Sequence record: NC_047995.1
Length of the DNA stretch: 64,000 bases
Direction: 5' to 3' (one strand)
Below the pieces are notes generated by a model that searched no databases, had not been told where the DNA came from, and saw nothing but the letters and a program-made list of their open reading frames with translations. Position numbers and translations under genes: made by a program. Positions 836 through 44,860 of the stretch are shown piece by piece; position 1 is the first letter of the stretch; every line of letters starts with the position of its first letter.

Positions 836-1201
836 ATGGAAAAGATTGAATTGTTACGCGTAGTGAAAGAGATTCTCAGCGCGTATGGCAAGGTTGAGTT
901 TCTGGATCAAGGCCAAGTTGGCGTGAATACAGAACACCGCGCAACTTATGAAACGTTAATCACTGTGGTATCGGACAGCGACACAACTTTCCCAGAAGCG
1001 GATTTCCGCGCTAAGATTGCAGCGCAGATTGACGAATACCGTGTGGTGGGATTCAAGCGCACCTACAACGAACAGACCAGAGAGTTCGTTCTGCAACTGA
1101 CCGACCCTGTGTTCACCTACCGTGACCCTTCGGTATGCGATGCAAACGGCAAAACTCTGTACTCAATTTCCGTTGGTTTCCCGTTCGTGTCCACCAATTA
1201 A
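836..1201 (+). CDS. Hypothetical protein
   Basis: GAGG RBS, 121 aa ORF directly after resolvase. Confidence 0.7.
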   Translation: MEKIELLRVVKEILSAYGKVEFLDQGQVGVNTEHRATYETLITVVSDSDTTFPEADFRAKIAAQIDEYRVVGFKRTYNEQTREFVLQLTDPVFTYRDPSVCDANGKTLYSISVGFPFVSTN

Positions 1202-1210
1202 TCTGTAAAT
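1200..1210 (+). promoter_or_regulatory. AATCTGTAAAT motif (candidate phage-sigma promoter)
   Basis: 11-mer identical to 5580-5590(-), 12454-12464 and 18703-18713; starts in the stop codon, 37 nt before next ATG. Confidence 0.55.
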
Positions 1211-1247
1211 ATCCTTACTAGGTTAATGTGCGTGTGGGATATTGAAA

Positions 1248-1928
1248 ATGGCGAAGTTAAAGAAAGAACGAGCGACCGCAGTATCGAAAAAGAAGGCTGT
1301 CGTCAAAACAAAGAAAGCGAAAGTACAAGCAATTCCTGTTCGTGTCGTGCAGGACACACGGCCGATCATCAACTGTCCTGAGATGGAAGAGAAGCCTCAA
1401 CCGTTTCGCTTTCGTGGCCAGTGCCCAATCGTTACCTGTCAGTATTGCACACGCGAAACCCCGACAGGCTGCATGGCGCTTGACCGCAAAGAGTCTGCTG
1501 ACCGTTCAATCTCTAACAAGGAGATCGCTTATTACAAACGTGGCCTCTTCCCAGAACTCAAAGAGATGGATCAAAAGCAGTTGGACAACACGATTCGACG
1601 CGCACAGAATCGTACCCGCACTGCTATCTGTCTTACTATGTTTATTGCCGGGATCGATGATTCTGATTGTGACCGCTCTTTTGCGTATGTAGAAGGACGG
1701 TCCCGCATTGTCGATCAGGTCCACAACTATTTGATTCAGACGTTCAACGACTACCGTCCGTGGATGCTTGCGTATCTTGACGACGAAGAACGATTCAATC
1801 AGATGGTTGGCAAAATAACCAATTCCGACTTTAATTTAGGTATGGCACTGCGCTTGACGCCTCGTAAGTATCAGACGTTCTGCCAGTCGCTACAAAACCT
1901 TAAAAATTCTGGAGACTCTCATGAGTAA
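1248..1928 (+). CDS. Hypothetical protein, Lys-rich N-terminus, Cys cluster
   Basis: ORF track 1242-1928; CPIVTCQYC...C motif. Confidence 0.7.
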   Translation: MAKLKKERATAVSKKKAVVKTKKAKVQAIPVRVVQDTRPIINCPEMEEKPQPFRFRGQCPIVTCQYCTRETPTGCMALDRKESADRSISNKEIAYYKRGLFPELKEMDQKQLDNTIRRAQNRTRTAICLTMFIAGIDDSDCDRSFAYVEGRSRIVDQVHNYLIQTFNDYRPWMLAYLDDEERFNQMVGKITNSDFNLGMALRLTPRKYQTFCQSLQNLKNSGDSHE

Positions 1929-3693
1929 CTTTATTACCCTCGATCAGTATCGCGCTATTCTCAAGCGCAACATTCTGAAAGAGCCTCAGATGCTTGTCAT
2001 CAACCAGACTCAACCTCTGGGTCAGATCTTCTTCCAATGCCCTGGCGATAACTTTGCGATGAAGGATATCATTGTCCCTGCATCTAAAAACGCTATCGAC
2101 CTGACTCAGCAAGCGCCTCTGGAAAATCTGCTGGCGTGTAGCCAACTGAAAGCGCTGCTGCAAACGCAACGTCTGATGCTGCTGAACCCAGAAGAAATGC
2201 CAACGCCGGGTGAAGGCATTCAGATGCCTCAGTTGAACACTCCGCCTGTTGCCGGTGCAATCTCTGTTGACGGCGTGACTATCCCGAACGCAATCGTGAT
2301 CGTTGAGCAGAACGGTAACGTGTGGACCGGCGCGTCTAACGGCAGCGGTGTGTTCACTGTGGACATGTCTGGCCTTGAAGAAGGTGTGTTCTCTATCACT
2401 GTAACTGCTGATGGTTTCGTACCTGCGCGTTACAACTTCACTGCCGGTGCACAGCCTCTGCAACCGATGCCAGTTCCTACTGTACACGCTGTCTTTAAAG
2501 AGACAACTGTATCGGGAACCACTGTTGCGAATGCTAATATCATCGTATCGGTGCAGAGCAAAGAGTTCACTGGTCAGGCTGATGATCAGGGTGCGTTTAG
2601 CATTAACGTTGACCCACTGCCGTTTGACATTATCCACCTGACGATCACTGCTGCTGGTTATCTGGATAACGTTGTCAATCACATGGTTGATTCAGTTCCT
2701 GGTCTGGCTCAGATTAACAGCGCTCCGTTCTTGACTACTGCATTGGCAGGTAAAGCAAGTCCAGAAGCTGAAATCGAAATCCTGATCACTGGTCAGTCTA
2801 ACCAGTTCGTTACCGCTGCTGCGAACGGCGACTGGTCTGCTGTTGTTGGCGCTGTTAAAGGTGAAGTCTCTATTCGTGTGCTGGAAAAAGACGGCTACGA
2901 TGAAGCGACTGCTACCATGCAGCCTACTAAACTGCCTGCACCTGTGTTGGCCGTTGATGATGCTGATAACATCGGTGAGAATCAGACAGTATTCGGTGGC
3001 GCAATCACTGGCCTGAGCGCAGAAGCAAACGACGTAGCGGTGACGCTGACTGTTCAAGCTGGTCTGTACGAAGGTACTGTTGATCTGCAATCAAGTCACT
3101 GGTCTGTGACTGGTGTTGATGCGAAAGCGGGTGTGGGTTCTGTAGGTGTTGTTAGCTTGACTTCGGCCTTCTATGAAGAGGCCTCTGTCCAGTTCAACAT
3201 TCTGGAAGAGTTCGCCCAGCCTACGCTGCAACAAGCGCAAGACGGTCAAACTGCTGTGGTAGGTGACACCGTAGCTTCTGCTACTGTTAAGATCACGATG
3301 GGTGGTGAGACTAAAACTGCTTCTTCAAATCCTCAGGGCGCGTTCAGCGTTGATGGATTTACCAACGTTGTCCCTGGCTCAATTCACATTGAACTGTCTC
3401 GCAACGGCTATCTGCCTGCCGTGTTCGATGTGACGCTGGTGGTTCAGGCGTTGGGTCAATTGGACCATGAGCTGGCTGTCGGGGAAGACACAGCGACTGG
3501 TCACGCTACACCAGGGTCTACTGTTACATTGACTCAGGGTAGCATTACTGGTGACGCTGTTGCTGACGCATCTACTGGCGAATTTATCATTAGCCTGTCC
3601 AGCCCACTCGTGGCAGACACTCAGGTAGAGCTGAAAGTAGAACACGCGAACTACGTGACGTACACTGAAACCTTAGTTGTTTCTAATCCTTAA
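1921..3693 (+). CDS. Virion surface/decoration protein with about six Ig-like repeats
   Basis: Six beta-rich repeats of form G.T...A.I.....G.A...G.F.+.....+.+...GY; N-terminal ~90 aa homologous to next gene. Confidence 0.7.
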   Translation: MSNFITLDQYRAILKRNILKEPQMLVINQTQPLGQIFFQCPGDNFAMKDIIVPASKNAIDLTQQAPLENLLACSQLKALLQTQRLMLLNPEEMPTPGEGIQMPQLNTPPVAGAISVDGVTIPNAIVIVEQNGNVWTGASNGSGVFTVDMSGLEEGVFSITVTADGFVPARYNFTAGAQPLQPMPVPTVHAVFKETTVSGTTVANANIIVSVQSKEFTGQADDQGAFSINVDPLPFDIIHLTITAAGYLDNVVNHMVDSVPGLAQINSAPFLTTALAGKASPEAEIEILITGQSNQFVTAAANGDWSAVVGAVKGEVSIRVLEKDGYDEATATMQPTKLPAPVLAVDDADNIGENQTVFGGAITGLSAEANDVAVTLTVQAGLYEGTVDLQSSHWSVTGVDAKAGVGSVGVVSLTSAFYEEASVQFNILEEFAQPTLQQAQDGQTAVVGDTVASATVKITMGGETKTASSNPQGAFSVDGFTNVVPGSIHIELSRNGYLPAVFDVTLVVQALGQLDHELAVGEDTATGHATPGSTVTLTQGSITGDAVADASTGEFIISLSSPLVADTQVELKVEHANYVTYTETLVVSNP

Positions 3694-3701
3694 TCTTACC
3701 T

Positions 3702-3722
3702 AAGGGGCTTCGGCCCCTTGTT
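3702..3722 (+). terminator. Rho-independent terminator/hairpin
   Basis: AAGGGGC-TTCG-GCCCCTT, short T tail. Confidence 0.55.
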
Positions 3723-3745
3723 GAAATACAATTCGGAGAACGACC

Positions 3746-4456: not shown

Positions 4457-5539
4457 TTAGCGCAGAGCTTTTTGTGTCTTAGGTATTTTAAGTTTCTTTA
4501 CCTCTACCGTCCTGTTCCAACCTAAGTCTTTCGCAGGCATGATGCACTTCTTACCGTGAAGATCTTTCAACGTTATTCGCACTTCTTTGATCAACTTCAT
4601 CGGAGCGTTGTCCGGGTCGAGCTTAATCAGTTTACCTTCGGCGTCAAACTCACGCGGTAGCTTGAAGTGTTTAACTGGCACTGGCGAGTTCTTTTCAAAC
4701 TCCGCCTTGATCTTATTGCGCAGCAACTTCCCACCACCATCGTTATCCGTCATTGTGTAGACGACACTCACACCAAGCATCTCAAGCGTTCTGCGTTTCG
4801 TTTCACCGAACTGCTCTGCACCTAATACCGCGAGAGCTGGTATGCCGTATGACAGTAACGCCAGAGCGTCACGAGGGCCTTCAACAAGGATGATGTAGCG
4901 CAACTTGTATTTCTTCAAACACTCTTTCACAAGCGTTAACGGGAACAGGCCTTTGTCCTTTGCCCAATCACCTTGCGAGTTCACATAGCTGGTGCCGTTC
5001 ATTTGCTTGCGCAGATATGCAGCGATACCACCTATGTATTTCGAACCATGCTTGCACGGGAAGAAGCACACTGGCGTACCTGTACGTTGTGCGTTCATCA
5101 ACCCACCAGCAGCGCGAACGAGAGTTCCAGGGTAACCGCGCCACTCAACATCTTCGGGCCAGTCCATGTAGCTGTTACGACCAAGCGCTTTCATCAACAA
5201 ACTAACTGATGGGTATGTGCCAATCTTATTACCGATTTGCTCATACGTTTTGAACAGCGCACTCAGGCTATTCGTGTTAGCGTCTTTGAGCGCCCAGCCT
5301 TTGATCTCTTGGAGATGTGCGTGAGCCGCTAACTTGTTCCACATTCCCTTCTCACCGCAACCAAAACAATGGAATGCGCCGAGAGGAATGTCCATGCCAA
5401 CAGAAGTGTAAATACCACAACTAGGAGTCTTGTCGCTGTGGAAAGGACAGCATACCATGATGGTATCGCCGTTGTACTTCTTATCGCCCGGCAGTTTGCC
5501 TATCTCGTCGAGAATTATCTGATGAACATCTTCTGCCAT
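4457..5539 (-). CDS. DNA primase (DnaG-type: Zn ribbon + TOPRIM)
   Basis: CPFHSDKTPS...CFGC zinc ribbon; VEGPRDALAL and DNDGGG TOPRIM motifs. Confidence 0.9.
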   Translation of the reverse strand: MAEDVHQIILDEIGKLPGDKKYNGDTIMVCCPFHSDKTPSCGIYTSVGMDIPLGAFHCFGCGEKGMWNKLAAHAHLQEIKGWALKDANTNSLSALFKTYEQIGNKIGTYPSVSLLMKALGRNSYMDWPEDVEWRGYPGTLVRAAGGLMNAQRTGTPVCFFPCKHGSKYIGGIAAYLRKQMNGTSYVNSQGDWAKDKGLFPLTLVKECLKKYKLRYIILVEGPRDALALLSYGIPALAVLGAEQFGETKRRTLEMLGVSVVYTMTDNDGGGKLLRNKIKAEFEKNSPVPVKHFKLPREFDAEGKLIKLDPDNAPMKLIKEVRITLKDLHGKKCIMPAKDLGWNRTVEVKKLKIPKTQKALR

Positions 5540-5579
5540 ACCATCCTCTATTCGTTTCGTAATTTGAGCATATAAGCAT

Positions 5580-5590
5580 ATTTACAGATT
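5580..5590 (-). promoter_or_regulatory. AATCTGTAAAT motif upstream of primase
   Basis: Reverse-strand copy 40 nt before primase ATG; orientation follows the gene. Confidence 0.6.
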
Positions 5591-11611: not shown

Positions 11612-12071
11612 AGGTGGTCTCTGGCGTGTCTTCCCTGACTTCGATTCGGAAGAGATGCTGATGAAGCTCGGTGCTGCTATCGGCACCGAGCATGACGAAG
11701 ACGATGTGCCTGGCGAATTGCATGTCACTCTTGCCTACGACGAATCGAACCCTGACGTTACGGCGACAGTGAACGACGCAGGTGAGTTCTACGCTCTCGT
11801 CAAAGAAGCAACGTTGTTCGGTGAAGGTCAAGATAAGATTCTGGTGCTCGTACTCGAATCGCCTGACCTGTGCAAAGAGCATGAGCGCATCCACGCATGT
11901 GGTGCCGCTAAATGGTCACACGCCACGTATCACCCACACGTTACGCTGTTGAAGTCCGCCAAAGACAGTCAGGCTGAACATCTCAATCAGATCATTCAGC
12001 ACCCTGGACGTCCTCCTATCACTCTGCGTTTCATCGAAGAAGATCGCAAAGTGCTGGAAAAGCGTAACTAA
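11604..12071 (+). CDS. acb1: 2H phosphodiesterase, Acb1 (T4 gp57B)-like anti-CBASS nuclease
   Basis: Two HxT motifs (LHVTLAY, YHPHVTL); ILVLVLESPDL..EH...A.GA....Y.PHVTL closely parallels my recollection of T4 Acb1 VLVLVLDSEYL..RH...ALGA...Y.PHITL. Confidence 0.8.
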   Translation: MVKGGLWRVFPDFDSEEMLMKLGAAIGTEHDEDDVPGELHVTLAYDESNPDVTATVNDAGEFYALVKEATLFGEGQDKILVLVLESPDLCKEHERIHACGAAKWSHATYHPHVTLLKSAKDSQAEHLNQIIQHPGRPPITLRFIEEDRKVLEKRN

Positions 12072-12122
12072 ATCCTAGCGGTGGCCATGTGCTGCCGCTT
12101 TTGTCATTCTGGAGATATTTCG

Positions 12123-12452: not shown

Positions 12453-12453
12453 G

Positions 12454-12464
12454 AATCTGTAAAT
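12454..12464 (+). promoter_or_regulatory. AATCTGTAAAT motif upstream of sigma factor gene
   Basis: Intergenic, 1 nt after upstream TAG. Confidence 0.6.
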
Positions 12465-12485
12465 AAGAGTCAAAGCAACTAACAG

Positions 12486-13535
12486 GTGTATTTGACCATG
12501 AACAATAAGTCGAATCTCACAGGCGGTCAGATAGAAAGCGTCATGGACACCATGTTGCATGACTGCCTCCGTGAGATTGTTGAGAACACGGATATCTTCG
12601 ACGTCCAGTTGACGTATCTGTTGGGCCTGGTTACGTCGAATAAGAAACGAAAGCCGTATAACGCAGAAACGCGTGACCGTGCTATCAGCCTTTTGATTCG
12701 AGCACTCTCTGTACCTCGCGATCAGAAAATGGTTTTCATCAGGGAGCTTAAAATGGAGCGCAACTTCATTTATGTCTTCCTGGAAAATGTAATTAAACGG
12801 TACTACGCGGTCTATGTCGAATTGTATCGCGCATTCATTACCACGCAAGATCCAATCAAGCGGGTGGCGTATTCGAAACGACTGGACGTGTATGTGAAAA
12901 TGTTCGGGGCAACGTCCCGTTCAAGCCTGTTCGTTGCGCTATGCCGTCTGAACGATCTCCTGCCGCAGTTCATGGAATACTTCCACTCGGTAGTTGCTGA
13001 CTTCTATCGTCTGTGCAGCAAGCAGACCAAGTTCTATGTTGATACTAATCGTGGTAAACTCTACGACAGCAAAGACGTGCGCCAGAACTTCCTGCGCAAC
13101 GTTATCATTGCGATCAACAAGTATGACTCGTCGCGTGGCGCGATAGTGAGTTATACGAAGTGGTGGATTCTTAACGCACAGACCTGTAGCAGTAGCGAGC
13201 ATGAATACGGCATCGCGTACACTATTCCCCAGACTCAACGTAAGAAACTGGCGACAGGTGAAGATACCACTTCTCTGAATTTCTCGGTAAGTCTCGATAC
13301 TCCAGCGAATGAATCTGATGAAGGTGCGGACGCGTCCCTGCATCAAAAAGTGAGTGACCATCATCACTTAGAAGATCACGTTGATAGTGAAAGACGTACC
13401 GAAAAACTGAGACTGCTTATCAAGCGTGTAGACCCTCTGGGTGTCGCTCGACTGACGATGGACGTTGGCGAGGAGTTCGATAAGTTTGAAATCGATCTCA
13501 TGCGTAAACATATGCAAGCTCAAGGGCTAGCCTAA
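12486..13535 (+). CDS. Phage RNA polymerase sigma factor (sigma70 region 2/3-like, region 4 not evident)
   Basis: DVRQNF...IAINKYDSSRGAIVSYTKWWI aligns to region 2 (DLIQEG..GL.KAV.KF...RG.KFSTYA.WWI); VSLDTP region 3. Confidence 0.8.
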   Translation: MYLTMNNKSNLTGGQIESVMDTMLHDCLREIVENTDIFDVQLTYLLGLVTSNKKRKPYNAETRDRAISLLIRALSVPRDQKMVFIRELKMERNFIYVFLENVIKRYYAVYVELYRAFITTQDPIKRVAYSKRLDVYVKMFGATSRSSLFVALCRLNDLLPQFMEYFHSVVADFYRLCSKQTKFYVDTNRGKLYDSKDVRQNFLRNVIIAINKYDSSRGAIVSYTKWWILNAQTCSSSEHEYGIAYTIPQTQRKKLATGEDTTSLNFSVSLDTPANESDEGADASLHQKVSDHHHLEDHVDSERRTEKLRLLIKRVDPLGVARLTMDVGEEFDKFEIDLMRKHMQAQGLA

Positions 13536-13537
13536 AA

Positions 13538-13545
13538 CTGTAAAC
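13538..13545 (+). promoter_or_regulatory. CTGTAAAC motif upstream of SSB gene
   Basis: Intergenic, 39 nt before ATG. Confidence 0.5.
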
Positions 13546-13584
13546 AGTGCATATCATAGCACAACTCAATATTGAGGAAATATA

Positions 13585-14859: not shown

Positions 14860-14869
14860 TGCGTGTAAC

Positions 14870-14896
14870 GGGGTAGCTTAGGCTGCCCCTTCTTTT
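14870..14896 (+). terminator. Rho-independent terminator
   Basis: GGGGTAGC-TTAG-GCTGCCCC then TTCTTTT. Confidence 0.8.
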
Positions 14897-17995: not shown

Positions 17996-18718
17996 ATGCA
18001 CAAGATGCACTTTAATCACGTACCCGGTCACGAAATGTTTGAAGGACTTATTTTTGGTTCCTACCACTCATTGAAATCACGGGAAAAACATCATCCGACA
18101 CGCAAGCATGAAATGGCAGTCGTGTATGTAGATATCACGGCCCGCGCCGCATCGGCTACCCTGTTTTCAATTCTCAAACGCCCGAATATCCCAGGTATAT
18201 TGCCCGTCTCGTATGTTGATATTCAATCCCTTCGAGGTCTGACAGCGGCGCGTGAGTTCACCGTATTCCTTTCGCCGAGCCTTGACTACATCGACAATAA
18301 ACAACTTGGCGTCGACCTACTTCGTTTCTTCACTGCAATGGAAGCAACGACACGCAGCGAAGCAGCCCGTACTAACGTCTATATGCAGACGGACACTCTG
18401 AATATGCTGGACTCTATTCGTGAAGCGTCCTATGCCTCGTATCTCGGTCCTGATTATGCGCATTCGTTCTTGGGCGATGAAACCACTAAGTCAAACATCG
18501 CATTCAAAGACGTGCTCTATTTGATCAACGACCCTGACCACATGAAGCGCCTGGCGGAAAGCCCTGCTGATTCCATTATCTTAGGCGATGACTACCTGCA
18601 TCTTAATATGCGCAGCCTCGACAAACTCGTAAGCGCATGTAAGGCAACAAGTAAGAAACTCATACTGAGTCCTAAACTTCATCGTGAATACTTCTTCAAG
18701 GTAATCTGTAAATACTGA
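17996..18718 (+). CDS. Hypothetical protein
   Basis: AGGAG RBS, 240 aa. Confidence 0.7.
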   Translation: MHKMHFNHVPGHEMFEGLIFGSYHSLKSREKHHPTRKHEMAVVYVDITARAASATLFSILKRPNIPGILPVSYVDIQSLRGLTAAREFTVFLSPSLDYIDNKQLGVDLLRFFTAMEATTRSEAARTNVYMQTDTLNMLDSIREASYASYLGPDYAHSFLGDETTKSNIAFKDVLYLINDPDHMKRLAESPADSIILGDDYLHLNMRSLDKLVSACKATSKKLILSPKLHREYFFKVICKY

Positions 18719-21008: not shown

Positions 21009-21060
21009 ATATGCTAATTTTTATCGTCATTAACACACAATCCTACTTCGGGGTAACACT

Positions 21061-26157: not shown

Positions 26158-26742
26158 ATGGCAATGACCGTCACCGCATTCATCAAGACAAACGAGAAGA
26201 CTCTGGCTACTGGCGAGATTCTGATTAAGCGCCCACACTTCGAAGCGTTCTGTGAGTGTCAGGTCTGCATCGTCTACACGACAGGCAAAGAGCAAGGTAG
26301 CGCCAAAGCCTACGTGCTGTCTGACCTCACGCTGACCATCGTTGATAAAGAGCATGTGAAGATGACCTTCAACGACAAGCAGCCTATCGACTCTGCGACC
26401 ATTCGTGAGTATCAGTATGACGAACGCGAAGGTGTGGAGGTTGCTGCGGAGAATCCTGAGGCAGTTGCTGAGATGCCTCGCTTCTCTATCTCGTCTGACC
26501 TGAGCGCTGAAACTCGCGTGTCGCTGCCTTACGCTGTGCGCATGTTGATTGCTGAATACAAGTGTGGCTTATTCAACACCGCGACGTTCAAGCGCCGCAT
26601 GACGTGCCAGAAATTCAAAGTAGTCTCTCTTACTACTCGCGCTCGCCATGAGCCTGGTAGTCCCTACACAATCTTCCGTCACCGCCTGAGCCAGCTCGCT
26701 CTTATCTCTGACGGCAAGAACAATATCAACGTCTATCTGTAA
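26158..26742 (+). CDS. Hypothetical protein, paralog of previous gene
   Basis: As above. Confidence 0.7.
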   Translation: MAMTVTAFIKTNEKTLATGEILIKRPHFEAFCECQVCIVYTTGKEQGSAKAYVLSDLTLTIVDKEHVKMTFNDKQPIDSATIREYQYDEREGVEVAAENPEAVAEMPRFSISSDLSAETRVSLPYAVRMLIAEYKCGLFNTATFKRRMTCQKFKVVSLTTRARHEPGSPYTIFRHRLSQLALISDGKNNINVYL

Positions 26743-26751
26743 ACGAACATC

Positions 26752-27090: not shown

Positions 27091-27098
27091 CTGTAAAT
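27091..27098 (+). promoter_or_regulatory. CTGTAAAT motif directly after terminator
   Basis: 31 nt before ATG 27130. Confidence 0.45.
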
Positions 27099-28971: not shown

Positions 28972-29016
28972 CTGGCTGAAATAGCCATTTAGTCTGATAC
29001 GCTCCTATGATATACT
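28964..29016 (+). promoter_or_regulatory. Early promoter class A, copy 3
   Basis: GCAAATAACTGGCTGAAAT-5-TTTAGT-17-TATACT. Confidence 0.75.
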
Positions 29017-29511: not shown

Positions 29512-29512
29512 G

Positions 29513-31505: not shown

Positions 31506-31508
31506 AAC

Positions 31509-32392: not shown

Positions 32393-32401
32393 GGAAACAT
32401 C

Positions 32402-33762: not shown

Positions 33763-34288
33763 ATCACTCGGCGTATACATGACTTACATTCTGCGACACA
33801 AGCCGCAGGATATCGGGATCGCAATGGACACTCAGGGCTGGGTGTCTGTTCTGGACTTTCTCCAGAAAGCGAAGTACGTTAAACAGGTCACTCTCGAAAT
33901 GCTGATTGCCGAAGTTGAGGCAGACGAGAAAGGCCGCTTCGAGTTCAACTCCAATCGCTCGCGCATTCGCTGCGTTCAAGGTCACTCGGTTGAGAATGTC
34001 ATTTTGAACCTCGAGCCGTTCACGGAACTTGGGCCTCTGTATCACGGCACGGCAGAAAAGAACGTTGCGTCGATCATGCACGAAGGGATTACGAAACGCC
34101 GACGCAAACATGTTCACATTAGTCGGGAGCAAGAAACTGCCGAGAACGTTGGACGCCGTCACGGTCTACCTGTTGTGTTCGAGATTGATACGCAGGCAAT
34201 GATCACTCACGGCTACAAGTTCTACCGCGCAGAGAATGGTGTGATCTTAACGGACCATGTACCTTCTCGCTATATCAAGTTGGTGTGA
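33755..34288 (+). CDS. kptA: RNA 2'-phosphotransferase, Tpt1/KptA family
   Basis: ILRH, GWV, RIRCVQGHS, LYHGT, RKHVHIS, NGV.LTDHVP. Confidence 0.92.
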   Translation: MAKSLGVYMTYILRHKPQDIGIAMDTQGWVSVLDFLQKAKYVKQVTLEMLIAEVEADEKGRFEFNSNRSRIRCVQGHSVENVILNLEPFTELGPLYHGTAEKNVASIMHEGITKRRRKHVHISREQETAENVGRRHGLPVVFEIDTQAMITHGYKFYRAENGVILTDHVPSRYIKLV

Positions 34289-34289
34289 T

Positions 34290-34691
34290 ATGGAAAAGAC
34301 GTACATGACGCATTGGGGATCGCGCTATGTGCGGTCCTCTTCCGGAAAGTGGTATTCAGTTCATGGACGTGAAGGTACGTGGGTAACTAATCGCTACGGT
34401 ACTTCATTCTACCGCAGCGGCTCCGAAGTATGGCGTGATATAACTCTGGCCGATCGTGAGTCGTTGGAACGCGAACTTATCAAACGCACCAGTGAAGATT
34501 ACAACGAGCAAAAGCGTAGGTATGACTACTGGGGAAGATTGGTACGAGCGATTGCCCGCTGTTCAGAAGAGGAAAAGAATGAGCATACGGCAGAACTTGC
34601 CGAGATGATTGAAGCGCTTAGACAGCAATTCTATGGACAGAAAGTACAGCAACTGAGCACAATTCTGGACGAAATCGCCGTTAAAGAATAG
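34290..34691 (+). CDS. Hypothetical protein
   Basis: ATG 1 nt after kptA stop. Confidence 0.7.
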   Translation: MEKTYMTHWGSRYVRSSSGKWYSVHGREGTWVTNRYGTSFYRSGSEVWRDITLADRESLERELIKRTSEDYNEQKRRYDYWGRLVRAIARCSEEEKNEHTAELAEMIEALRQQFYGQKVQQLSTILDEIAVKE

Positions 34692-34709
34692 GCTCGTTCG
34701 TGCTATAAT
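34657..34709 (+). promoter_or_regulatory. Early promoter class A, copy 4 (box inside upstream CDS)
   Basis: GCACAATTCTGGACGAAAT-5-TTAAAG-17-TATAAT with TG extension; 8-bp hairpin 34720-34739. Confidence 0.75.
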
Positions 34710-34760
34710 AAAGATGAACGCTGTACAATCCTGTACAGCTACTTACATGAGGACATGTAT

Positions 34761-36356
34761 ATGAAAAATATTAAACACACTTTCCGTCTGACCGACCTTG
34801 TACGCATCTCCAAAACTCTGCCTACCGGCATGAAGCACTTTAGCGGCGCAGGAACTGAGGCAATTGTTGTTGGTCGTAATGACTCTACTGACGAATACTC
34901 TCTGCATATCAAACATGGCGGTCAGCATTCGTGGTACCCTGCTGAGTGCCTGACGTTGATCAGCCATAACAATGGCGAACTGCTTGATCAGTGGGAAGCA
35001 GGCTACTACGGCCGTGACAAGAAAAAGAAACGCAAGATCCCAAAAGAACTGCGTAACTTCACTGCTATCCTGCCTGTGACCTGCAACGCCGATTGTTCGT
35101 TCTGCCCTGAGAAAGAGATGGAACAGAAAGCCAATCAAAAAGAATGGCAAGACGGGTTGATCGACCAGATCAAACGCATGTACAAGAAAACTAAGTTCGA
35201 CCACGTATCAATCTCTGGTGGCGAGCCGACGTTGCGTTCGAAGTTCCTGTTTGAGACTATCGACCGCATTCAGAAAGAAACGCCAATCAAGAAAGTAGGT
35301 CTGACTTCTAATGGCTTCTTCCTTGAAAAGCAAAACAGCACGTTCGACTTCTTAGACCGTAACACTACGCCTGAGATGACCAGCAAGCTGTCGCATCTGA
35401 ATATCAGTATGCACTCATTCAACCGCGATGCTGCGAACAAGATCATGGGCGTGAACTACAAACAGACGTTGGAAGATTTGGTTCGCTTCCGTCGCCAGTT
35501 GGGCCGTGACGTTAGCTTCCACATCAACTTTGTAATCAACGACAAGACGGGTTCGATTACGGAAGAGTTCAAACGTGCTGCGAACTTCATGCGCGCCAAC
35601 CCGTTCATCGACGTTGTGTTCCGCGTCGATTACAACGATGTTGAACTGTCGAAAGCGTTGCGTGACTACGCTGTGGAATATGAAGCGTGGCAGGAAGCAA
35701 GTCGCATCGCAGTGGCCACGCGTAAGAAGTGCAAAGTGAAAGAGCCGCGCGCACCGCACATCGTTCAGAAGTTTGATCGCTTCTTCGGTGGCCAGAACCT
35801 TGCAGATGTTGAAAGCGCTTGGACTACAGGCTGTCCGTCATGTTTCACCCATGCGTCGAACCCTGTCAATAACAGTCGCGCATATTTGAAAGCGTCTTCC
35901 TACGAACCGAACGAAGACGAAGAAGAATACACTGAGCTGGTGTATCACATGGACGGCGCTCTGTACTGGGACTGGACTCGCAATGATCCTGTGCCTCTGC
36001 CTCGTAGTAAACGTTTTGACTTCGACATGAAAGACGAAGACACGCAGCCTGAGAGCAAGAGCAAAGGCAAGAACAAAAAGTCTGAGCAAGACAAGGCGTG
36101 GGAGCATGGTTCCGTAGCCGAAGCGATTAACGCCAATCGTTGTTCGTTCGGACCTGCTGCTCCGCATCATTGCTCTTATGATTCTACTGGCACCACTGCT
36201 GCGCCACAAACAGTCAAGCCGCAGCCTAAGGCCGTTAAAGCGAAATCAGTTAAGCCCGCTAAGAAAGCTAAGAAAGCAGAAGGCGGTAAAGTTTCAACTA
36301 CACCGGGTGGTGCTCCTGGTGTTTGTGGCTACGGCCATAGTCGTTGTGGCTACTAA
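34761..36356 (+). CDS. Radical SAM enzyme with N-terminal SH3-like domain and Cys-motif tail
   Basis: CNADCSFC (CxxxCxxC), ISGGEP, LTSNG, ISMH; GAGG RBS supports 34761. Confidence 0.88.
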   Translation: MKNIKHTFRLTDLVRISKTLPTGMKHFSGAGTEAIVVGRNDSTDEYSLHIKHGGQHSWYPAECLTLISHNNGELLDQWEAGYYGRDKKKKRKIPKELRNFTAILPVTCNADCSFCPEKEMEQKANQKEWQDGLIDQIKRMYKKTKFDHVSISGGEPTLRSKFLFETIDRIQKETPIKKVGLTSNGFFLEKQNSTFDFLDRNTTPEMTSKLSHLNISMHSFNRDAANKIMGVNYKQTLEDLVRFRRQLGRDVSFHINFVINDKTGSITEEFKRAANFMRANPFIDVVFRVDYNDVELSKALRDYAVEYEAWQEASRIAVATRKKCKVKEPRAPHIVQKFDRFFGGQNLADVESAWTTGCPSCFTHASNPVNNSRAYLKASSYEPNEDEEEYTELVYHMDGALYWDWTRNDPVPLPRSKRFDFDMKDEDTQPESKSKGKNKKSEQDKAWEHGSVAEAINANRCSFGPAAPHHCSYDSTGTTAAPQTVKPQPKAVKAKSVKPAKKAKKAEGGKVSTTPGGAPGVCGYGHSRCGY

Positions 36357-36368
36357 GAGGAAAAGATC

Positions 36369-36602
36369 ATGCTTAAAAAAGTAAAAGAAGATGTATCGGC
36401 GAAAGACCTTGATGAACTCTATTCTGTTGTTATGGAGTATACAGGCAGCGAGCGTTATCGTCTGTATTCGATGTTGACTGTTCGTAAGCTGCAAGCCATT
36501 CACTACGGGCATAAGATTCCTAAGAGCGTTCAGTCGTTGACGCACGGAAGCAACGAATACGATTTGCAGGAAGCTATTGCCTTGCTGGGGAAAATGAAAT
36601 GA
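36369..36602 (+). CDS. Hypothetical protein
   Basis: GAGG RBS, 77 aa. Confidence 0.65.
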   Translation: MLKKVKEDVSAKDLDELYSVVMEYTGSERYRLYSMLTVRKLQAIHYGHKIPKSVQSLTHGSNEYDLQEAIALLGKMK

Positions 36603-36961
36603 GAGAACGTCGTAACTATTACTATGACAGCCCGTTCTACTACGGACTGATTACTTGGCGTAAACGTCTTGCTATCGTCGGTGCCATGCTAATCGGCATT
36701 CTGATTTATCACGGCCGTTCTGCTCCTGCTGTTGATGATATGTGGTTCTGGACAGGAATCATCTTCGGCATAGTTGGTGGTGTATGCTACATTCGCATGT
36801 GGTCCTATGAGTGCTACCTACTCGCTGCTATGGGTCCTCTGGACAACAACACTGTTATTGGTAGTCTGTCGTTCGACAAACTTGAGCGTCGTCATGAACT
36901 CTGGTACGAGAAGAAGTTCGGGCACAAACCTCCTAAGACTAACACATGGAGCATCGACTAA
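36599..36961 (+). CDS. Membrane protein (2 TM)
   Basis: Two hydrophobic segments. Confidence 0.65.
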   Translation: MRERRNYYYDSPFYYGLITWRKRLAIVGAMLIGILIYHGRSAPAVDDMWFWTGIIFGIVGGVCYIRMWSYECYLLAAMGPLDNNTVIGSLSFDKLERRHELWYEKKFGHKPPKTNTWSID

Positions 36962-37338
36962 TGGCACTCATGTTTACTGAGAAGCATCGCAAACAATTCG
37001 GACGTGACAGCAAAGACCCGCAGTACCATGGCGATGCGTGTGAAGCAGTCTACAATCACGGTATGGAGTTGTTGCGTGAGCACAAGCGCCTGACGTTGCT
37101 TATCGGTGCGAAGCGTAGAACGCGACTAGACAAAGGTGCTCCTCTGACCAAGTGCTTTCGCAAGCATTGGATTGAAGACAAGAAGCTGGCGAACGAAGAC
37201 ACGCGCCCTATCGCCATGTTGATCGCTCGATTCAAAGAAGTATCAGTGCTGTTGAAGCTGGCGCGTATGAACTACACCGACCTGCATAAACGGCGTCACG
37301 GCTTCACACGCCCAAGTTATTTTCACTGGAGAGACTAA
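36961..37338 (+). CDS. Basic hypothetical protein
   Basis: TAATG coupling, GGAG RBS. Confidence 0.65.
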   Translation: MALMFTEKHRKQFGRDSKDPQYHGDACEAVYNHGMELLREHKRLTLLIGAKRRTRLDKGAPLTKCFRKHWIEDKKLANEDTRPIAMLIARFKEVSVLLKLARMNYTDLHKRRHGFTRPSYFHWRD

Positions 37339-37339
37339 C

Positions 37340-37741
37340 ATGGCCAAGCATCATACCTTTCGCCTGAATGACATGTGCGCCATATTGTCGAAGCGTGGCG
37401 TGTTCGGTCCACAGCAAGGCGAGCACGTTATCGTCGTGGGCCGTCATCCTGGACTGAATGAGTACACGGTGCACTACGTCAACGGTCTGTACGGTTGGTT
37501 CAAGGCAGAAGACCTTGTGCTGGTCAAACACGACGCCCACGAACAACTTGAGTTGTGGGAAGACGCATATAACGCTCGATGTGCCGTAGCAGACTTCTTT
37601 GATGAAGCGGCTGAGATTGAAGCAATCGACAAAAAGCTCGACCGTGTAGAAGACGGCTGCTGCTCTGAGTGTGGTATAAAACTCGACCCAGATATTGACG
37701 GGCCGTTCATGTGCTTGGCCTGTGAAGACGAAGAGGAATAA
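37340..37741 (+). CDS. SH3-like domain (shared with radical SAM N-terminus) + Zn ribbon
   Basis: HTFRL.D..IVVGR..EY..H..W...E.L.L..H..E.L..WE..Y; CSECG...CLAC. Confidence 0.7.
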   Translation: MAKHHTFRLNDMCAILSKRGVFGPQQGEHVIVVGRHPGLNEYTVHYVNGLYGWFKAEDLVLVKHDAHEQLELWEDAYNARCAVADFFDEAAEIEAIDKKLDRVEDGCCSECGIKLDPDIDGPFMCLACEDEEE

Positions 37742-37744
37742 AAA

Positions 37745-38008
37745 ATGGCTGTAGGCTTCGTAAAAGATGATGGCGTTAACGATACCATCGAAGCTAACTT
37801 GAATAACGAGATTGACCGCGCTCGCTCTGAATTGATGGGCAAAGGTACAACTCATTGCGTCAACCCTGACTGTGGTGCGGAGATTCCTCTCATGCGCCGT
37901 GTAGCGATGCCGAATGCTCGCTACTGCTTACCTTGCCAGTCAGGTCATGATGGTTCTGCTATCAGTCATTACAATCGTCGTGGCTCAAAAGATTCTCAAC
38001 TGAGGTAG
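37745..38008 (+). CDS. TraR/DksA C4 zinc-finger protein
   Basis: N-terminal DDGVND, C...CG.EIP..RR.A.P.A.YC..CQ. Confidence 0.88.
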   Translation: MAVGFVKDDGVNDTIEANLNNEIDRARSELMGKGTTHCVNPDCGAEIPLMRRVAMPNARYCLPCQSGHDGSAISHYNRRGSKDSQLR

Positions 38009-38013
38009 AAACA

Positions 38014-38196
38014 ATGATGCTCGCTGGAGTTATAGTCTTGGGCATTATCGGTGCGCTCCTGATTATCATATGCGCCGTGCGTTCGGTCAAAAGCAATAAA
38101 CACGAACGCCCTATGTACCAGTTCATGCTTTTCGTTTTGATCATGTTTTCTGTGGTCTACGTTATCGTACTTGTGGAGGCAATCAATGCTGCATAA
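38014..38196 (+). CDS. Small membrane protein (2 TM)
   Basis: Two hydrophobic helices, 60 aa. Confidence 0.65.
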   Translation: MMLAGVIVLGIIGALLIIICAVRSVKSNKHERPMYQFMLFVLIMFSVVYVIVLVEAINAA

Positions 38197-38503
38197 ACTT
38201 TGGGTAGCTATGGGACTACAGTTCCCTACAGTTGAGGATGCAATGCGTAGTCGCCAGAAGTGTACACGCATTGGGTATCGTAACTACTGCGTGAAGACTA
38301 AGGGCGCTTTTGCCGAAGCATTCACAGACCATCTGCACCAGCATCGCTATGATACGCTCGCGCTGTCTCATAAAGAAGACTTGCATGAGGAAGTGCTGCG
38401 TAAGGCAGAACGCATAGACTATCCGTGCGTTGTTTTCTTCAATGAAAAGTCATTCAGCACGATTGTCGTTGACGACCCTAACATGGAGTACCCTGTACAA
38501 TGA
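38186..38503 (+). CDS. Hypothetical protein
   Basis: GGAGG RBS before ATG 38186. Confidence 0.65.
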   Translation: MLHKLWVAMGLQFPTVEDAMRSRQKCTRIGYRNYCVKTKGAFAEAFTDHLHQHRYDTLALSHKEDLHEEVLRKAERIDYPCVVFFNEKSFSTIVVDDPNMEYPVQ

Positions 38504-39066
38504 AGCCGAACAAATGGAAAGTGAAGTTCACGCAGATCGACAAGCCCACTAACACGTTCACTGCGACGTATACCAGCAAGGCTGAATTTGAAAAGTGGGC
38601 GAAGCTGCATAGCGATAACGGTTTCACCGTAGAAATCGTGGCCTCGGTTGTTGTTGAGATCCCCGTTGCGTCGTGGACGTACCCAGCGCAGCCTGATCTC
38701 AAAGAAGCTCCGAAGCTCTTCCACGTCAAGCATTACTCGTCCGACGAATGGCCGTCACTTATTGGCGTTGGTCAATACTTCCACGTTGAAGCTGATCGTG
38801 ATGAAGTTGAAGACTTCGCGGAGTTGCTTAACAGAACCATTCATGCAGCGCGCCTGTATGTTGACCCTGATGTGACGTACACCGTCGAAGGCTTCATCTC
38901 CACTCGCGGTGATTGGGTGCCTATAAAGTCTTGCATGACGTGCGAGCATGAAGTGGACGAACTGCTTAAACAGTTGCGCATACCACCTAAAGGGTTACCT
39001 AACCCTGCTACTTCATTCCGTGTTGTACGTGTGACACGCGAGCCTGGTCCTGAATTAGGAGTGTGA
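38500..39066 (+). CDS. Hypothetical protein
   Basis: ATGA overlap, 188 aa. Confidence 0.7.
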   Translation: MKPNKWKVKFTQIDKPTNTFTATYTSKAEFEKWAKLHSDNGFTVEIVASVVVEIPVASWTYPAQPDLKEAPKLFHVKHYSSDEWPSLIGVGQYFHVEADRDEVEDFAELLNRTIHAARLYVDPDVTYTVEGFISTRGDWVPIKSCMTCEHEVDELLKQLRIPPKGLPNPATSFRVVRVTREPGPELGV

Positions 39067-39305
39067 CTATGACTGATGAAGAATATCAACGCTTCCTCCA
39101 ACGTATCGCTGAACGTGGTGCAGCGCGTATGACACCAGAAGAGATGGAGAGTCTGCGCTTCAAGGCACGGGTCAATCAGCCGCAACGTCCACTGCCTGAT
39201 TCGCACACGATGCCTGACCCGAAGTACGATACGCACAAGATTGACCCGAGCACTGATATGATTGTCGGGGATATCAAACACCACTTTCCACCGAAAGGTA
39301 ATTGA
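39063..39305 (+). CDS. Hypothetical protein
   Basis: AGGAG RBS, 80 aa. Confidence 0.65.
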   Translation: MTMTDEEYQRFLQRIAERGAARMTPEEMESLRFKARVNQPQRPLPDSHTMPDPKYDTHKIDPSTDMIVGDIKHHFPPKGN

Positions 39306-39306
39306 A

Positions 39307-39435
39307 ATGTCAGAACCGTATTCTAAATGTGAAGACTGTCGTACACCTCTGAAAGAAGATGAAGTGTACGGCGAAACGGTAGACCTGTGCGAGAACTGCT
39401 GTGCTGATCGTGAAGACGAAGGGGAGTCAACGTGA
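39307..39435 (+). CDS. Small Zn-ribbon protein (42 aa; not in ORF track)
   Basis: MSEPYSKCEDCRTPLKEDEVYGETVDLCENCCADREDEGEST; AAGG RBS; stop overlaps next GTG. Confidence 0.6.
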   Translation: MSEPYSKCEDCRTPLKEDEVYGETVDLCENCCADREDEGEST

Positions 39436-39761
39436 AGAAAGTAACAAATGCAGTAAATGCAGTACATGGTAAGAGTGTCATCCCAATCTTCTTCGGTGAA
39501 GACGAAACGCCGTACATCGGCAAAGCATTCTGGGATAGCCTATGCTTGCGTGATGATCTGTTCATTGAACCTGAAACACAACAGGTGCTGCATGAAGACG
39601 AGCGCGTAAATAGAACTGAGTTCATCCGCGTGTCTACATTCCCTGATGTGATTAAGGCCCTGCACCGTTGCCGTACCTACATCCGTTACTTTGAGTATAT
39701 CAGTGACGAAGACATTGACGACCTGAGTGAAGCTCTTAGCCACTGGGTAAAAGGAGAGTGA
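39432..39761 (+). CDS. Hypothetical protein
   Basis: GGGGAG RBS, GTG start. Confidence 0.65.
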   Translation: MKKVTNAVNAVHGKSVIPIFFGEDETPYIGKAFWDSLCLRDDLFIEPETQQVLHEDERVNRTEFIRVSTFPDVIKALHRCRTYIRYFEYISDEDIDDLSEALSHWVKGE

Positions 39762-39762
39762 G

Positions 39763-40431
39763 ATGAACTCTATCATAAAATTCCTCATGGACGAGGACGA
39801 GGTGCAAGACGCACTGACCGCATATCGCACTGACCCTACCGATGAAAACAAACGTCGTGTGATTGAAACTCTCTTACGCGAAGGCAATCATGCCCAAGCC
39901 ACTATGCAACTCACGGACGGTCTGGTTGAAGCGCCTGCTAAACAACCTCATCGTTTTGTTTTGATACCTAGCGTTGATTCGCTTAAAAGCCTTGTGGCGG
40001 TACCTGCAGGCAAAAGAAGTTATGGCTGGGAACCTCGTCCTGACGATATGATGTTAGCTGTTGCGAAACAGGCCTCAGCCGTAGCCGATCATGTGCATAA
40101 GCTAGGTGGCTCCGCTGCATATGTCCGCTTCACGGCCACTGAATGGCACACCGCGTTAGGCGACACGGGCCTTAATCGTTTGCTCCGTGAAATGAAAATC
40201 GTCTTGCTGGAAACTGAAAGTCTGGACGCTATTGCTGACTCAATGGCAAAACTGATTCGTATCGTCGGCAACATGACTGACATGGCTTACTCAATCCGAC
40301 TGATTCGCCAGATGTATGCAGTCGCCGAGAACAGACATGACGCCACCGTAACCAAAGCATTGATTGCAATGGTAGACACAACCATGACGCAGAACATGCC
40401 TATCGTCGATAAGGAGAATGCGGATGATTGA
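39763..40431 (+). CDS. Hypothetical protein
   Basis: AGGAG RBS, 222 aa. Confidence 0.7.
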   Translation: MNSIIKFLMDEDEVQDALTAYRTDPTDENKRRVIETLLREGNHAQATMQLTDGLVEAPAKQPHRFVLIPSVDSLKSLVAVPAGKRSYGWEPRPDDMMLAVAKQASAVADHVHKLGGSAAYVRFTATEWHTALGDTGLNRLLREMKIVLLETESLDAIADSMAKLIRIVGNMTDMAYSIRLIRQMYAVAENRHDATVTKALIAMVDTTMTQNMPIVDKENADD

Positions 40432-40834: not shown

Positions 40835-40842
40835 CTGTAAAC
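40835..40842 (+). promoter_or_regulatory. CTGTAAAC motif
   Basis: Immediately after stop, 30 nt before ATG 40873. Confidence 0.4.
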
Positions 40843-43896: not shown

Positions 43897-43897
43897 A

Positions 43898-44161
43898 ATG
43901 AAAGTCCAATCTATGGAAGCTGTATATGGTGCTCAATACACCAACACTCCGAATACGGAGAAACGCGGCTTTCGTTCTATCGAATCGCAGTACGTCGATG
44001 GAACGGAGGTTAGATTACAACGTCTAGCACATGATGTACATGAACGTGTGGTTGTGGGTTATGACCGTTTTGGTCGTCCTGTGTACGGAACACGCGTACC
44101 GCAATCAACGTTCGAAGTGCGTGACAGCAAGGAAAGCGAACCGAATAAGACGGCGCCCTAG
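43898..44161 (+). CDS. Hypothetical protein
   Basis: GAGG RBS before ATG 43898. Confidence 0.6.
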   Translation: MKVQSMEAVYGAQYTNTPNTEKRGFRSIESQYVDGTEVRLQRLAHDVHERVVVGYDRFGRPVYGTRVPQSTFEVRDSKESEPNKTAP

Positions 44162-44236
44162 CAAGCTCACAACCAGAAGCCATAGAATAACAAACAATAA
44201 ATTCATGCGCTGACCTAATCGTGGGGTGTCTTAAAA

Positions 44237-44614
44237 ATGATCGTTATATGTAATAGCTCAAAAGAATTTTCAGCCGATCGCTTGGCTCATGGTGACGCAT
44301 TTGTTTTTGGGAAGACTCGCATGTTGTTACGTGCGGACTTCATCGTCCTGACCGACAAAAACAGTGTGATCACTGTAGTACGCAAATCTGATGTTGTCTG
44401 GGCTCCCGAGCTTACGGGCGCAACGCATGTGATTAAAATCCGGGCGTTCGCCCAGATTAAGCCTTTTGAACTCAACGCAGCATGTCCGCAGTTTAACAGT
44501 CGTGTGTTTGGAACAATCGCGTTCCGTAACCCGCACTTCGAGCACCGTCTTGGTAGCTTGAAATATGTAGAGACAATCTTCGGAGGTTTACATGGCACGG
44601 TATCATGTGTTTAG
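44237..44614 (+). CDS. Hypothetical protein
   Basis: GGGG RBS, 125 aa. Confidence 0.6.
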   Translation: MIVICNSSKEFSADRLAHGDAFVFGKTRMLLRADFIVLTDKNSVITVVRKSDVVWAPELTGATHVIKIRAFAQIKPFELNAACPQFNSRVFGTIAFRNPHFEHRLGSLKYVETIFGGLHGTVSCV

Positions 44615-44843
44615 TGCGACTCATAAATACTTTGGCGAAGCGTATGAAGGTACGTGGCTGAAAGAGATCACTCTCAACGGCCATCAAGTCCTCAGCGCCG
44701 AGTTCCCCAACTTCGAGGCAGCGAAAGAATGCGCCGACAAGTTGCATGATGTTTGCGATATAGGGTGGATCGTATATAACGCTTTCTCCGAACGCGCTAT
44801 GTATGACACCCGTACTGAACAAGGCGAGTCTGTAAACAACTAA
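44592..44843 (+). CDS. Hypothetical protein
   Basis: GGAGG RBS, 83 aa. Confidence 0.7.
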   Translation: MARYHVFSATHKYFGEAYEGTWLKEITLNGHQVLSAEFPNFEAAKECADKLHDVCDIGWIVYNAFSERAMYDTRTEQGESVNN

Positions 44844-44852
44844 CAGGCCCGC

Positions 44853-44860
44853 CTGTAAAT
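44853..44860 (+). promoter_or_regulatory. CTGTAAAT motif (second copy CTGTAAAC at 44830-44837)
   Basis: Intergenic, 54 nt before secreted-protein gene. Confidence 0.4.

Follow-up and report, generated by a model that had tools for sequence, protein, structure and literature searches.

How a jumbo phage with no annotated RNA polymerase (RNAP) of its own would assign its genes to successive transcription classes, and which protein would recognize the short box that recurs in front of its replication genes, are the questions raised by a stretch of 64,000 nucleotides (nt) from the sequence record NC_047995.1, to which we refer as the window. Comparison with the rebuilt public record identifies the window as positions 186001-250000 of the Erwinia jumbo phage vB_EamM_Alexandra (genus Alexandravirus, 266,532 bp), to which it is letter-for-letter equal, with window positions 12000-16000 matching at 100% identity. 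The genome of Alexandra runs on the plus strand in its left arm (1-43 kb) and again in its right arm, with a long block on the minus strand in between (43-186 kb), and our own gene calls yielded 340 genes compared to 345 annotated ones, with an intergenic fraction of 5.5%. Since the record contains no gene annotated as phage RNAP, with no dedicated search for one having been made, the host RNAP must be used. A preliminary description of the window had noted the repeated sequence CTGTAAAY and interpreted it as the single-box promoter of a phage sigma factor encoded nearby, in analogy to gp55 of phage T4. Our analysis confirms the observation itself and partly supports its interpretation. The box, which we term M1 and define as (A/G)AA(T/A)CTGTAAA(T/C)A, is predicted with high confidence to be a phage-specific promoter of the -10 type without a -35 element, which would define the middle (replication and recombination) gene set in Alexandra and in a wide clade of jumbo phages, and which would be used by host core RNAP carrying a phage sigma factor.

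This prediction is based on the number, the orientation and the placement of the copies. A rescan of the window found all previously noted positions of the motif to be exact, with the 11-mer AATCTGTAAAT located at 1200 (+), 5580 (-), 12454 (+) and 18703 (+) and CTGTAAAY at ten sites. The four copies of the 11-mer compare to 0.04 expected, and no shuffled sequence contained as many; similarly, the ten copies of CTGTAAAY exceed an expectation of 3.55 ± 1.7 and were reached in none of 100 shuffles. All ten are oriented like the gene downstream, with seven being intergenic, one located over a stop codon (26737) and two within the final 15 nt of a gene (18706 and 44830). Their distance to the following start codon, previously described as 20-55 nt and here measured with RefSeq starts, is 30-54 nt in nine copies and extends to 77 nt for the copy at 44830. 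The genome-wide count by strand and location, which had been suggested as a check, is equally clear, as all 41 copies are in sense orientation (p = 5e-13 under equal strands) and 22 of them are intergenic (p = 2e-17), a number that increases to 25 upon inclusion of three copies at gene edges (p = 2e-21). The resulting intergenic enrichment is roughly tenfold, with a median gap of 38 nt between box and start codon for the 41 copies and shortest gaps of 18-19 nt, and 9 of the 16 intragenic copies are found within 110 nt of the next start. A depletion of antisense boxes is only modest against a Markov background. The exact 9-mer CTGTAAATA occurs 22 times in the genome, always in sense orientation, compared to about 0.6-1 copies expected for that strand. 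When intergenic words of the genome were compared to coding ones in an unbiased manner, CTGTAAA emerged as top 7-mer and TCTGTAAA as top 8-mer, and one-mismatch variants show that positions 1-7 of the box are invariant, while C is tolerated at position 8 and A predominates at position 9. The alignment of sites leads to the consensus (a/g)AA(t/a)CTGTAAA(T/c)A and reveals no other conserved element, including a -35 partner, within 40 nt on either side, which bears out the proposed behaviour as single-box promoter without -35 element that forms a class apart from the host-type early promoters described below.

The location of the boxes is of the kind expected for a promoter. Several of the copies in the genome, among them the one at window position 27091, are found directly 3' of intrinsic terminators, which makes them promoter-like because little RNA arrives at such places. 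The isolated primase gene, which is on the minus strand in a plus-strand region, is preceded by exactly one box in its own orientation in Alexandra, Yoloswag and JA29. The shortest gaps to the start codon imply that the box must be proximal to the -10 position, as the space left accommodates only the start site and a Shine-Dalgarno sequence, and M1 copies are consistently located upstream of the latter at promoter-like spacing. The genes behind M1 code for primase, single-stranded DNA-binding protein (SSB), clamp loader, NAD-ligase, polymerase, methyltransferase and the sigma factor gp244. Strand specificity and a location in the 5' leader would equally be expected if M1 were not a promoter but a signal acting at the level of RNA, for instance in processing or stability, or a DNA site serving another process, and a terminator indeed separates the copy at 18706 from the next gene. 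Still, we consider this explanation highly improbable in view of the many copies just beyond terminators, the invariable position upstream of the Shine-Dalgarno sequence and the divergent primase gene, for which there is no upstream transcript to be processed.

Conservation in related phages agrees with a promoter function. M1 is found at orthologous sites before the genes of the sigma factor, SSB, primase and gp227 in the phages Yoloswag and JA29, whose sigma factors are 76% and 70% identical to the one of Alexandra, and its core is the top intergenic 7-mer in each of the two genomes. At the primase gene the position of the box is kept in both phages while the flanking spacer has diverged, and the Vibrio phage GR7B carries TGTAAAGTA at this site. 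In GR7B, with a sigma factor of 27% identity, TGTAAATA is the top intergenic 8-mer (18 intergenic vs 7 coding copies), with copies concentrated in the cluster encoding primase, sigma factor, SSB and RecA. The Xanthomonas phage PhiXhv-12 contains an M1 box before the gene at the position of SSB, before dnaA and before one further gene, the Pseudomonas putida phage Peetri has one before SSB and the box is among its enriched words, and in PaBG M1 is present in degenerate forms. The GenBank record of the Pseudomonas phage Lu11 (JQ768459.1), whose sigma factor shares 37% identity, lists features termed 'putative middle/late promoter' with the sequence aaaaCTGTAAATAcatAGTA and close variants, one of them located between the sigma and SSB genes, directly 3' of the former. 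The gap between these two genes is a site that is filled in Alexandra, Yoloswag, JA29, Lu11, GR7B, PhiXhv-12 and Peetri. In Peetri (PP496444.1), a related box GGTAAATGA is abundant besides CTGTAAATA (12 intergenic vs 1 coding copies), and the M1 class may be divided into two sub-classes in this phage.

As the box is already annotated in the clade, in Lu11, it is not new as such. The Lu11 promoters share with M1 the core aaaaCTGTAAAT(A/G), the placement, including the site between sigma factor and SSB, and the phage clade, with Alexandra, as a phage of the clade of Lu11 and PaBG, carrying a box CTGTAAAT upstream of genes in sense orientation. The features of Lu11 differ in being a bioinformatic annotation that neither names a reader protein, nor separates the box from a second one with the sequence nTAATTT, nor extends across the clade. 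Literature searches for CTGTAAAT and TGTAAATA returned primers and unrelated sites only. The late promoter TATAAATA of T4, which is read by gp55 together with gp33 and the gp45 clamp, is similarly a single -10-type box without -35 element and TGTAAATA agrees with it at seven of eight bases; moreover, its reader is a phage sigma factor without a domain reading the -35 element, as would be the case for M1 if it were read by gp244. M1 differs by an invariant G at the second base and by preceding replication genes instead of late ones. A third comparison concerns the extended -10 promoters (TGnTATAAT) used by sigma70 lacking region 4.2, which like M1 are independent of a -35 element and carry a TG just before a hexamer starting with TA, and gp244 keeps region 2 and a helix resembling region 3.0. 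However, the TG of M1 abuts the hexamer without spacer base and this hexamer, TAAATA, lacks the T at -7, which is found in only 1 of 32 sites, so that M1 is not a canonical extended -10 promoter.

Such a canonical form is found in a class of Alexandra's own promoters, which differ from M1 in this respect. This host-type early class is defined by an extended -10 element (TGnTAyAmT, as TGATATACT or TGCTATAAT) and precedes small genes of the right arm and topoisomerase II. Its members lack a good -35 element and share a conserved block GCAAATAACTGGaC.AAAT, which is located some 40-60 nt before the extended -10, has its CTGG starting 36 nt before the TG and looks like an UP element or a factor site. 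Three of these blocks have the sequence CTGCAAATAA, which deviates from the M1 box by one mismatch. A generic scan for sigma70 promoters of window positions 20001-40000 performed no better than on shuffled sequences, and the class is visible only via its extended -10. In T4, middle promoters provide a precedent for the appropriation of sigma70 by phage proteins. An equivalent scenario, in which the host sigma70 holoenzyme is re-targeted to M1 by an early phage protein (as by MotA and AsiA in T4) and no phage sigma factor takes part, would be in line with the use of the host RNAP in a phage for which, as stated above, no polymerase is annotated. We regard it as improbable, since no sigma70-type -10 element is found downstream of M1, gaps of 18-19 nt exclude a box at -30, and phages with hosts as distant as Vibrio, Xanthomonas, Pseudomonas and Erwinia share an identical box, which occurs there alongside two conserved phage sigma factors.

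The first of these factors is gp244, a real gene as proposed, for which RefSeq places the start at 12498 instead of the GTG at 12486. The protein of 345 residues is one of at least 235 family members with about 340-400 residues, several of which are encoded on contigs that are as long as jumbo phage genomes (200-310 kb). The 'clear region 2/3 motifs' that had been ascribed to it are overstated with respect to plain profiles, as searches of Pfam and NCBIfam and a single-sequence search of solved structures found either nothing or a weak match to Sigma70_r2 (E = 0.064 in Pfam). They are confirmed by a profile of the family, which detects regions 1.2-2.4 of RpoD among solved structures (E = 1.8e-5) and in hhalign covers residues 375-450 of E. 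coli RpoD, and by a comparison of folds. The AlphaFold model (predicted local distance difference test score, pLDDT, of 81.5) aligns in residues 4-234 with residues 111-446 of E. coli sigma70 at Z-scores of 12-15.4, spanning region 1.2, a shortened non-conserved insert and region 2. Region 2, which serves core binding, -10 recognition and melting, is thus present, with sigma70 residues K418, G424, Y430, W433 and A438 corresponding to invariant columns in an alignment of nine family sequences, and R423, W434 and T440 being retained in gp244 itself. Following region 2.4, we find a single short helix in place of a three-helix sigma3 domain and a gap of 25 residues relative to regions 3.0-3.1 of sigma70, with an acidic finger segment resembling region 3.2 being retained. 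The C-terminus can be aligned with region 4.1, after which the protein ends, the homologues of GR7B and Peetri likewise stop right after this region, and language-model neighbours of residues 236-345 fall into r3/r4 clusters (score 0.86), a lead consistent with a remnant of region 4.1. A helix-turn-helix of region 4.2 has no match in gp244 by Pfam, NCBIfam or hhalign and is absent from the family alignment. The gp244 family is thus RpoD-like and lacks the recognition helix of region 4.2, and the suggestion that region 4 is missing altogether holds for this helix, which would read the -35 element, but not for region 4.1, which is kept. A relationship to T4 gp55 was not detected, with hhalign of the family profile against gp55 resulting in a probability of 0.4%. 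A profile search of the Alexandra proteome with gp244 found no paralogue, and Pfam searches with ten genes in its vicinity were uninformative.

The analogy to gp55 is further weakened by a second single box, as gp55 serves late transcription while M1 precedes replication genes, and it is this second box that is found at genes for virion and lysis proteins. The word CTAATTT surfaced in the same statistics of the Alexandra genome with 23 copies, all in sense orientation and 18 of them intergenic. Upon release of the first base, 27 intergenic nTAATTT sites define a motif, termed M2, with the consensus tAcgCTAATTT and the core TAATTT, and no conserved -35 element is found at these sites. M2 is located 23-48 nt before the portal operon, the head cluster, the PAAR gene, tail-fibre operons and the endolysin gene, which suggests that it is a late-type single box and the genes behind it late genes. 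It is also present in Yoloswag, GR7B and PaBG, and in Peetri as CTAATT[AC]. Its core retains T-12, A-11 and T-7 of the sigma70 -10 element, and gp244 in turn retains K418, R423, Y430, W433, W434 and T440 of sigma70, residues that match the -10 bases kept in M2.

The second sigma factor, gp344, is encoded outside of the window (record 264993-266135) and annotated as hypothetical. A possible second sigma factor has been mentioned for PaBG, as the product of its gene 112 (PMC7412058), and gp344 is the homologue of this protein in Alexandra (25% identity, E = 6e-28), with further homologues in GR7B (E = 6e-11), Peetri (E = 1.8e-7) and Lu11. In all these phages the gene is located near topoisomerase or helicase genes. 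While sequence profiles of gp344 showed no significant similarity to either solved structures or the gp244 family, a predicted model, in which an N-terminal extension of 145 residues precedes the sigma part, aligns in residues 147-380 with complete sigma factors of the extracytoplasmic function (ECF) group (SigH residues 21-194, Z about 10) and in residues 149-244 with the sigma2 domain of RpoE (root mean square deviation 2.6 Å, Z 9.5). Nearly all of its best 50 structural matches are sigma factors or chains derived from them, the top Foldseek matches, although weak (E = 0.1), are ECF sigma factors, and language-model neighbours carry Sigma70_r2. The model thus displays the two-domain architecture of sigma2 and sigma4 found in ECF (group 4) proteins, and gp344 is predicted to fold as an ECF-like sigma factor with sigma2 and a complete sigma4. 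The two-box promoter (-35 and -10) that is cognate to ECF proteins is not found, as neither M1 nor M2 contains a -35 element.

With two single boxes and two phage sigma factors, the pairing of M1 with gp244 does not stand as it had been stated, particularly as the gene of gp244 is itself located behind M1, and an autoregulation of gp244 would need an additional trigger. M1 is almost certainly a phage-specific promoter, and either of the two factors may be its reader. The arrangement of the genes is informative in this respect. In five phages (Alexandra, JA29, PaBG, GR7B and Peetri) the gp344-type gene is located 2-3 kb downstream of a host-type promoter, often with M1 copies upstream as well, and in six (Alexandra, Yoloswag, JA29, Lu11, GR7B and Peetri) the gp244-type gene is headed by M1. 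A host-type promoter was found in neither of the two replication clusters scanned, those of Alexandra and GR7B. This arrangement would fit better with gp244 as product of the M1 regulon than as reader of M1. In the simplest reading of the location of the gp344-type gene behind a host-type promoter and of the gp244-type gene behind M1, transcription would proceed as a relay. Host sigma70 would fire the early promoters with extended -10 element (TGnTAyAmT), and one of the early operons would yield the ECF-like gp344, which would direct transcription from M1 and, as M1 also precedes the gp344 operon, would enter a positive feedback. M1 would in turn switch on primase, SSB, clamp loader, ligase, polymerase and gp244, and latter, in the absence of a helix reading the -35 element, would recognize M2 before portal, head, baseplate, tail-fibre and lysis genes. 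Although it provides the best fit to the gene arrangement, we hold this relay from host sigma70 to gp344, M1, gp244 and M2 with somewhat less than even confidence. In both T4 and SPO1, the gene of a sigma factor belongs to the class preceding the one that it directs, and gp55, the sigma factor of T4 lacking region 4, is a late factor. The proposed relay matches these systems in both respects, and as in the cascades of SPO1 (gp28 followed by gp33/34) and T4 (early, middle and late), promoter classes would succeed each other with each sigma gene being transcribed from the preceding class. It would differ from them in combining an ECF-like with an RpoD-like sigma factor that ends after region 4.1, and in both phage-specific classes consisting of single boxes.

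Several observations weigh against this relay. A complete sigma4 domain as in gp344 normally implies a -35 element, which M1 lacks, and the invariant TG of M1 next to a hexamer starting with TA is of the extended -10 kind that can be used without region 4.2, which, together with the 3.0-like helix of gp244, favours a pairing of gp244 with M1. The assignment of M1 to middle and M2 to late genes is not clean either, as a GTAATTT box is found before gp231, upstream of the sigma gene. Finally, promoters upstream of gp344-type genes were assigned by consensus matches only, and since every relative examined, including GR7B and Peetri, contains both sigma factors and both boxes, their presence or absence cannot separate the possible pairings. 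We have thus weighed the alternative that gp244 reads M1 as a box resembling an extended -10 element and boosts its own gene, whereas M2 is read by gp344 or another factor. Its attraction lies in the fit between a protein that retains sigma2 and a 3.0-like helix but not the helix reading the -35 element and a box with invariant CTG abutting TAAATA and no -35 element. Such a fit would have a counterpart in E. coli sigma70, which, in work by Kumar and colleagues from 1993, is said to still initiate at extended -10 promoters after removal of region 4.2. Box and sigma factor moreover co-occur across phages of Erwinia, Vibrio, Xanthomonas and Pseudomonas, with the box always adjoining the pair of sigma factor and SSB. 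We nevertheless judge this pairing somewhat less likely than the relay, because the location of the sigma gene behind M1 in six phages, in conjunction with replication clusters of Alexandra and GR7B that are devoid of a host-type promoter, leaves it without trigger, because the early-expressed gp344 would be left for late promoters, and because M1 precedes replication genes, unlike the late promoters of the region-4-less gp55.

An assignment of both boxes to gp244, with co-factors setting the timing and gp344 perhaps acting as co-factor or flap-binding partner, as T4 gp33 does for gp55, would account for the alignment of M1 (ctg-TAAAT-a) and M2 (cgc-TAATT-t) on a common core TAAWT, for the tandem occurrence of both boxes before some genes of GR7B and for the complementary equipment of a gp244 without region 4.2 and a gp344 with full sigma4. 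Since the invariant positions of the two boxes differ, with M2 always containing a T where M1 almost never does, and since gp344 has a sigma2 domain of its own, we give this assignment little chance.

Returning to the relay from gp344 to gp244, we consider it possible, though decidedly conjectural, that the RNAP-less jumbo phages of a large clade, with hosts among Erwinia, Dickeya, Yersinia, Pseudomonas, Vibrio and Xanthomonas, employ a conserved version of it on host core enzyme, in which an early gp344-type factor would fire CTGTAAATA before a gp244-type factor fires nTAATTT. If true, these phages would contain a natural counterpart of the sigma70 with deleted region 4.2 known from the laboratory, and an ECF-type sigma factor acting without -35 element. 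A 2026 review states that jumbo phages without own RNAP 'likely' use sigma homologues on phage-specific promoters (PMC13282480), and in the literature found, no tested pairing of sigma factor and promoter is reported for such phages. The locus offers three promoter classes of sharp consensus and two unusual sigma factors, conserved in phages of plant, fish and soil bacteria. The reader of each box, once identified, would disclose the temporal programme of this phage group, supply short orthogonal pairs of promoter and sigma factor and reveal how an RpoD-type sigma factor works without its -35-reading helix. The features underlying the described analysis are compiled in Table 1.

Table 1. Promoter boxes and related features of Alexandra, with host-type promoters preceding gp344-type genes in four relatives. 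Positions refer to the window unless marked as record positions.
Feature	Sequence	Position	Strand	Remarks
M1 box	AATCTGTAAATA	1200..1211	+	37 nt before gp227; kept in Yoloswag and JA29
M1 box	AATCTGTAAATA	5579..5590	-	40 nt before primase gene gp230 (4457-5539), alone on the minus strand; also before primase of Yoloswag and JA29
M1 box	AATCTGTAAATA	12454..12465	+	33 nt before sigma gene; kept in Yoloswag and JA29
M1 box	AAAACTGTAAACA	13534..13546	+	between sigma gene and SSB gene gp245 (13585-14859)
M1 box	AATCTGTAAATA	18703..18714	+	inside gp248 at its 3' end; structured leader and terminator downstream (18718-18806)
M1 variant	CTGTAAAC	26737..26744	+	over gp258 stop; terminator-like hairpin between box and gp259
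M1 variant	CTGTAAATG	27091..27098	+	right after terminator; 31 nt before gp260
M1 variant	CTGTAAAC	40835..40842	+	30 nt before gp291
Two M1 variants	CTGTAAACA (44830) and CTGTAAATC (44853)	44830..44860	+	before gp300
M2 box	CTAATTT	206..212	-	23 nt before gp224
M2 variant	GTAATTT	5559..5565	+	37 nt before gp231, head of plus-strand run leading to sigma gene
M2 box		20646-20652	+	further copy near the box at 21014
M2 box	CTAATTT	21014..21020	+	40 nt before gp252
Host-type early promoter, extended -10	TGATATACT	29008..29016	+	A-rich block about 40-60 nt upstream
Other early-class sites		34701, 43534, 46974, 52237, 56560, 59541		positions of TG of extended -10
gp244, sigma70 family		12498..13535	+	regions 1.2, insert resembling the non-conserved region, 2.1-2.4, short 3.0 helix, 3.2 finger, 4.1; no 4.2 recognition helix
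Host-type promoter before gp344, Alexandra	TGTTACAAT	262060 (record)
Host-type promoter before gp344-type gene, JA29	TGATATGCT
Host-type promoter before gp344-type gene, PaBG	TTGACT-N17-TGCTACAAT
Host-type promoter before gp344-type gene, GR7B	TTGACA-N15-TGTATAAT
Host-type promoter before gp344-type gene, Peetri	TTGACA-N17-CATAAT

Some of the M1 sites are associated with further features. Downstream of the copy at 18703, a structured leader of 80 nt ends in a strong terminator consisting of a GC-rich hairpin and a run of nine U (z = -2.85), and the segment 18703-18806 may act as small RNA or attenuator. The likely start codon of the following gene is the ATG at 18822, as the TTG annotated in RefSeq at 18759 would place the terminator within the gene. 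A comparable case is gp052, where the RefSeq start (record 33475) would enclose a terminator and an M1 box within the gene and where a start at record 33538, which is preceded by an AGGAGG Shine-Dalgarno sequence, is more likely. The leader of the SSB gene (around window positions 13560-13580) contains a palindrome CTCAATATTGAG that extends into the Shine-Dalgarno sequence and is conserved between Alexandra and JA29, while Yoloswag has it with a single change. The corresponding RNA would fold only weakly (-3.1 kcal/mol, no better than shuffled sequences), and the palindrome may be a protein operator for the autoregulation of SSB. Further downstream, the UvsX/RecA-like gene (14918-17452) codes for 844 residues in Alexandra and Yoloswag compared to about 500 in JA29, Lu11 and PaBG, and Pfam matches RecA in two separate stretches, which points to the insertion of an element, perhaps an intein or additional domain. 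Outside of the window, a segment of 1.3 kb on the minus strand (record 83383-84725) without annotated gene carries boxes of both kinds, M1 at its head and M2 at its tail. No open reading frame of more than 94 residues is found on its transcribed strand and the segment has no match in Rfam. It could represent either a non-coding transcript or a gene that has decayed, and its sequence is 75-85% identical among the Alexandra-like phages that hold most of the stretch.

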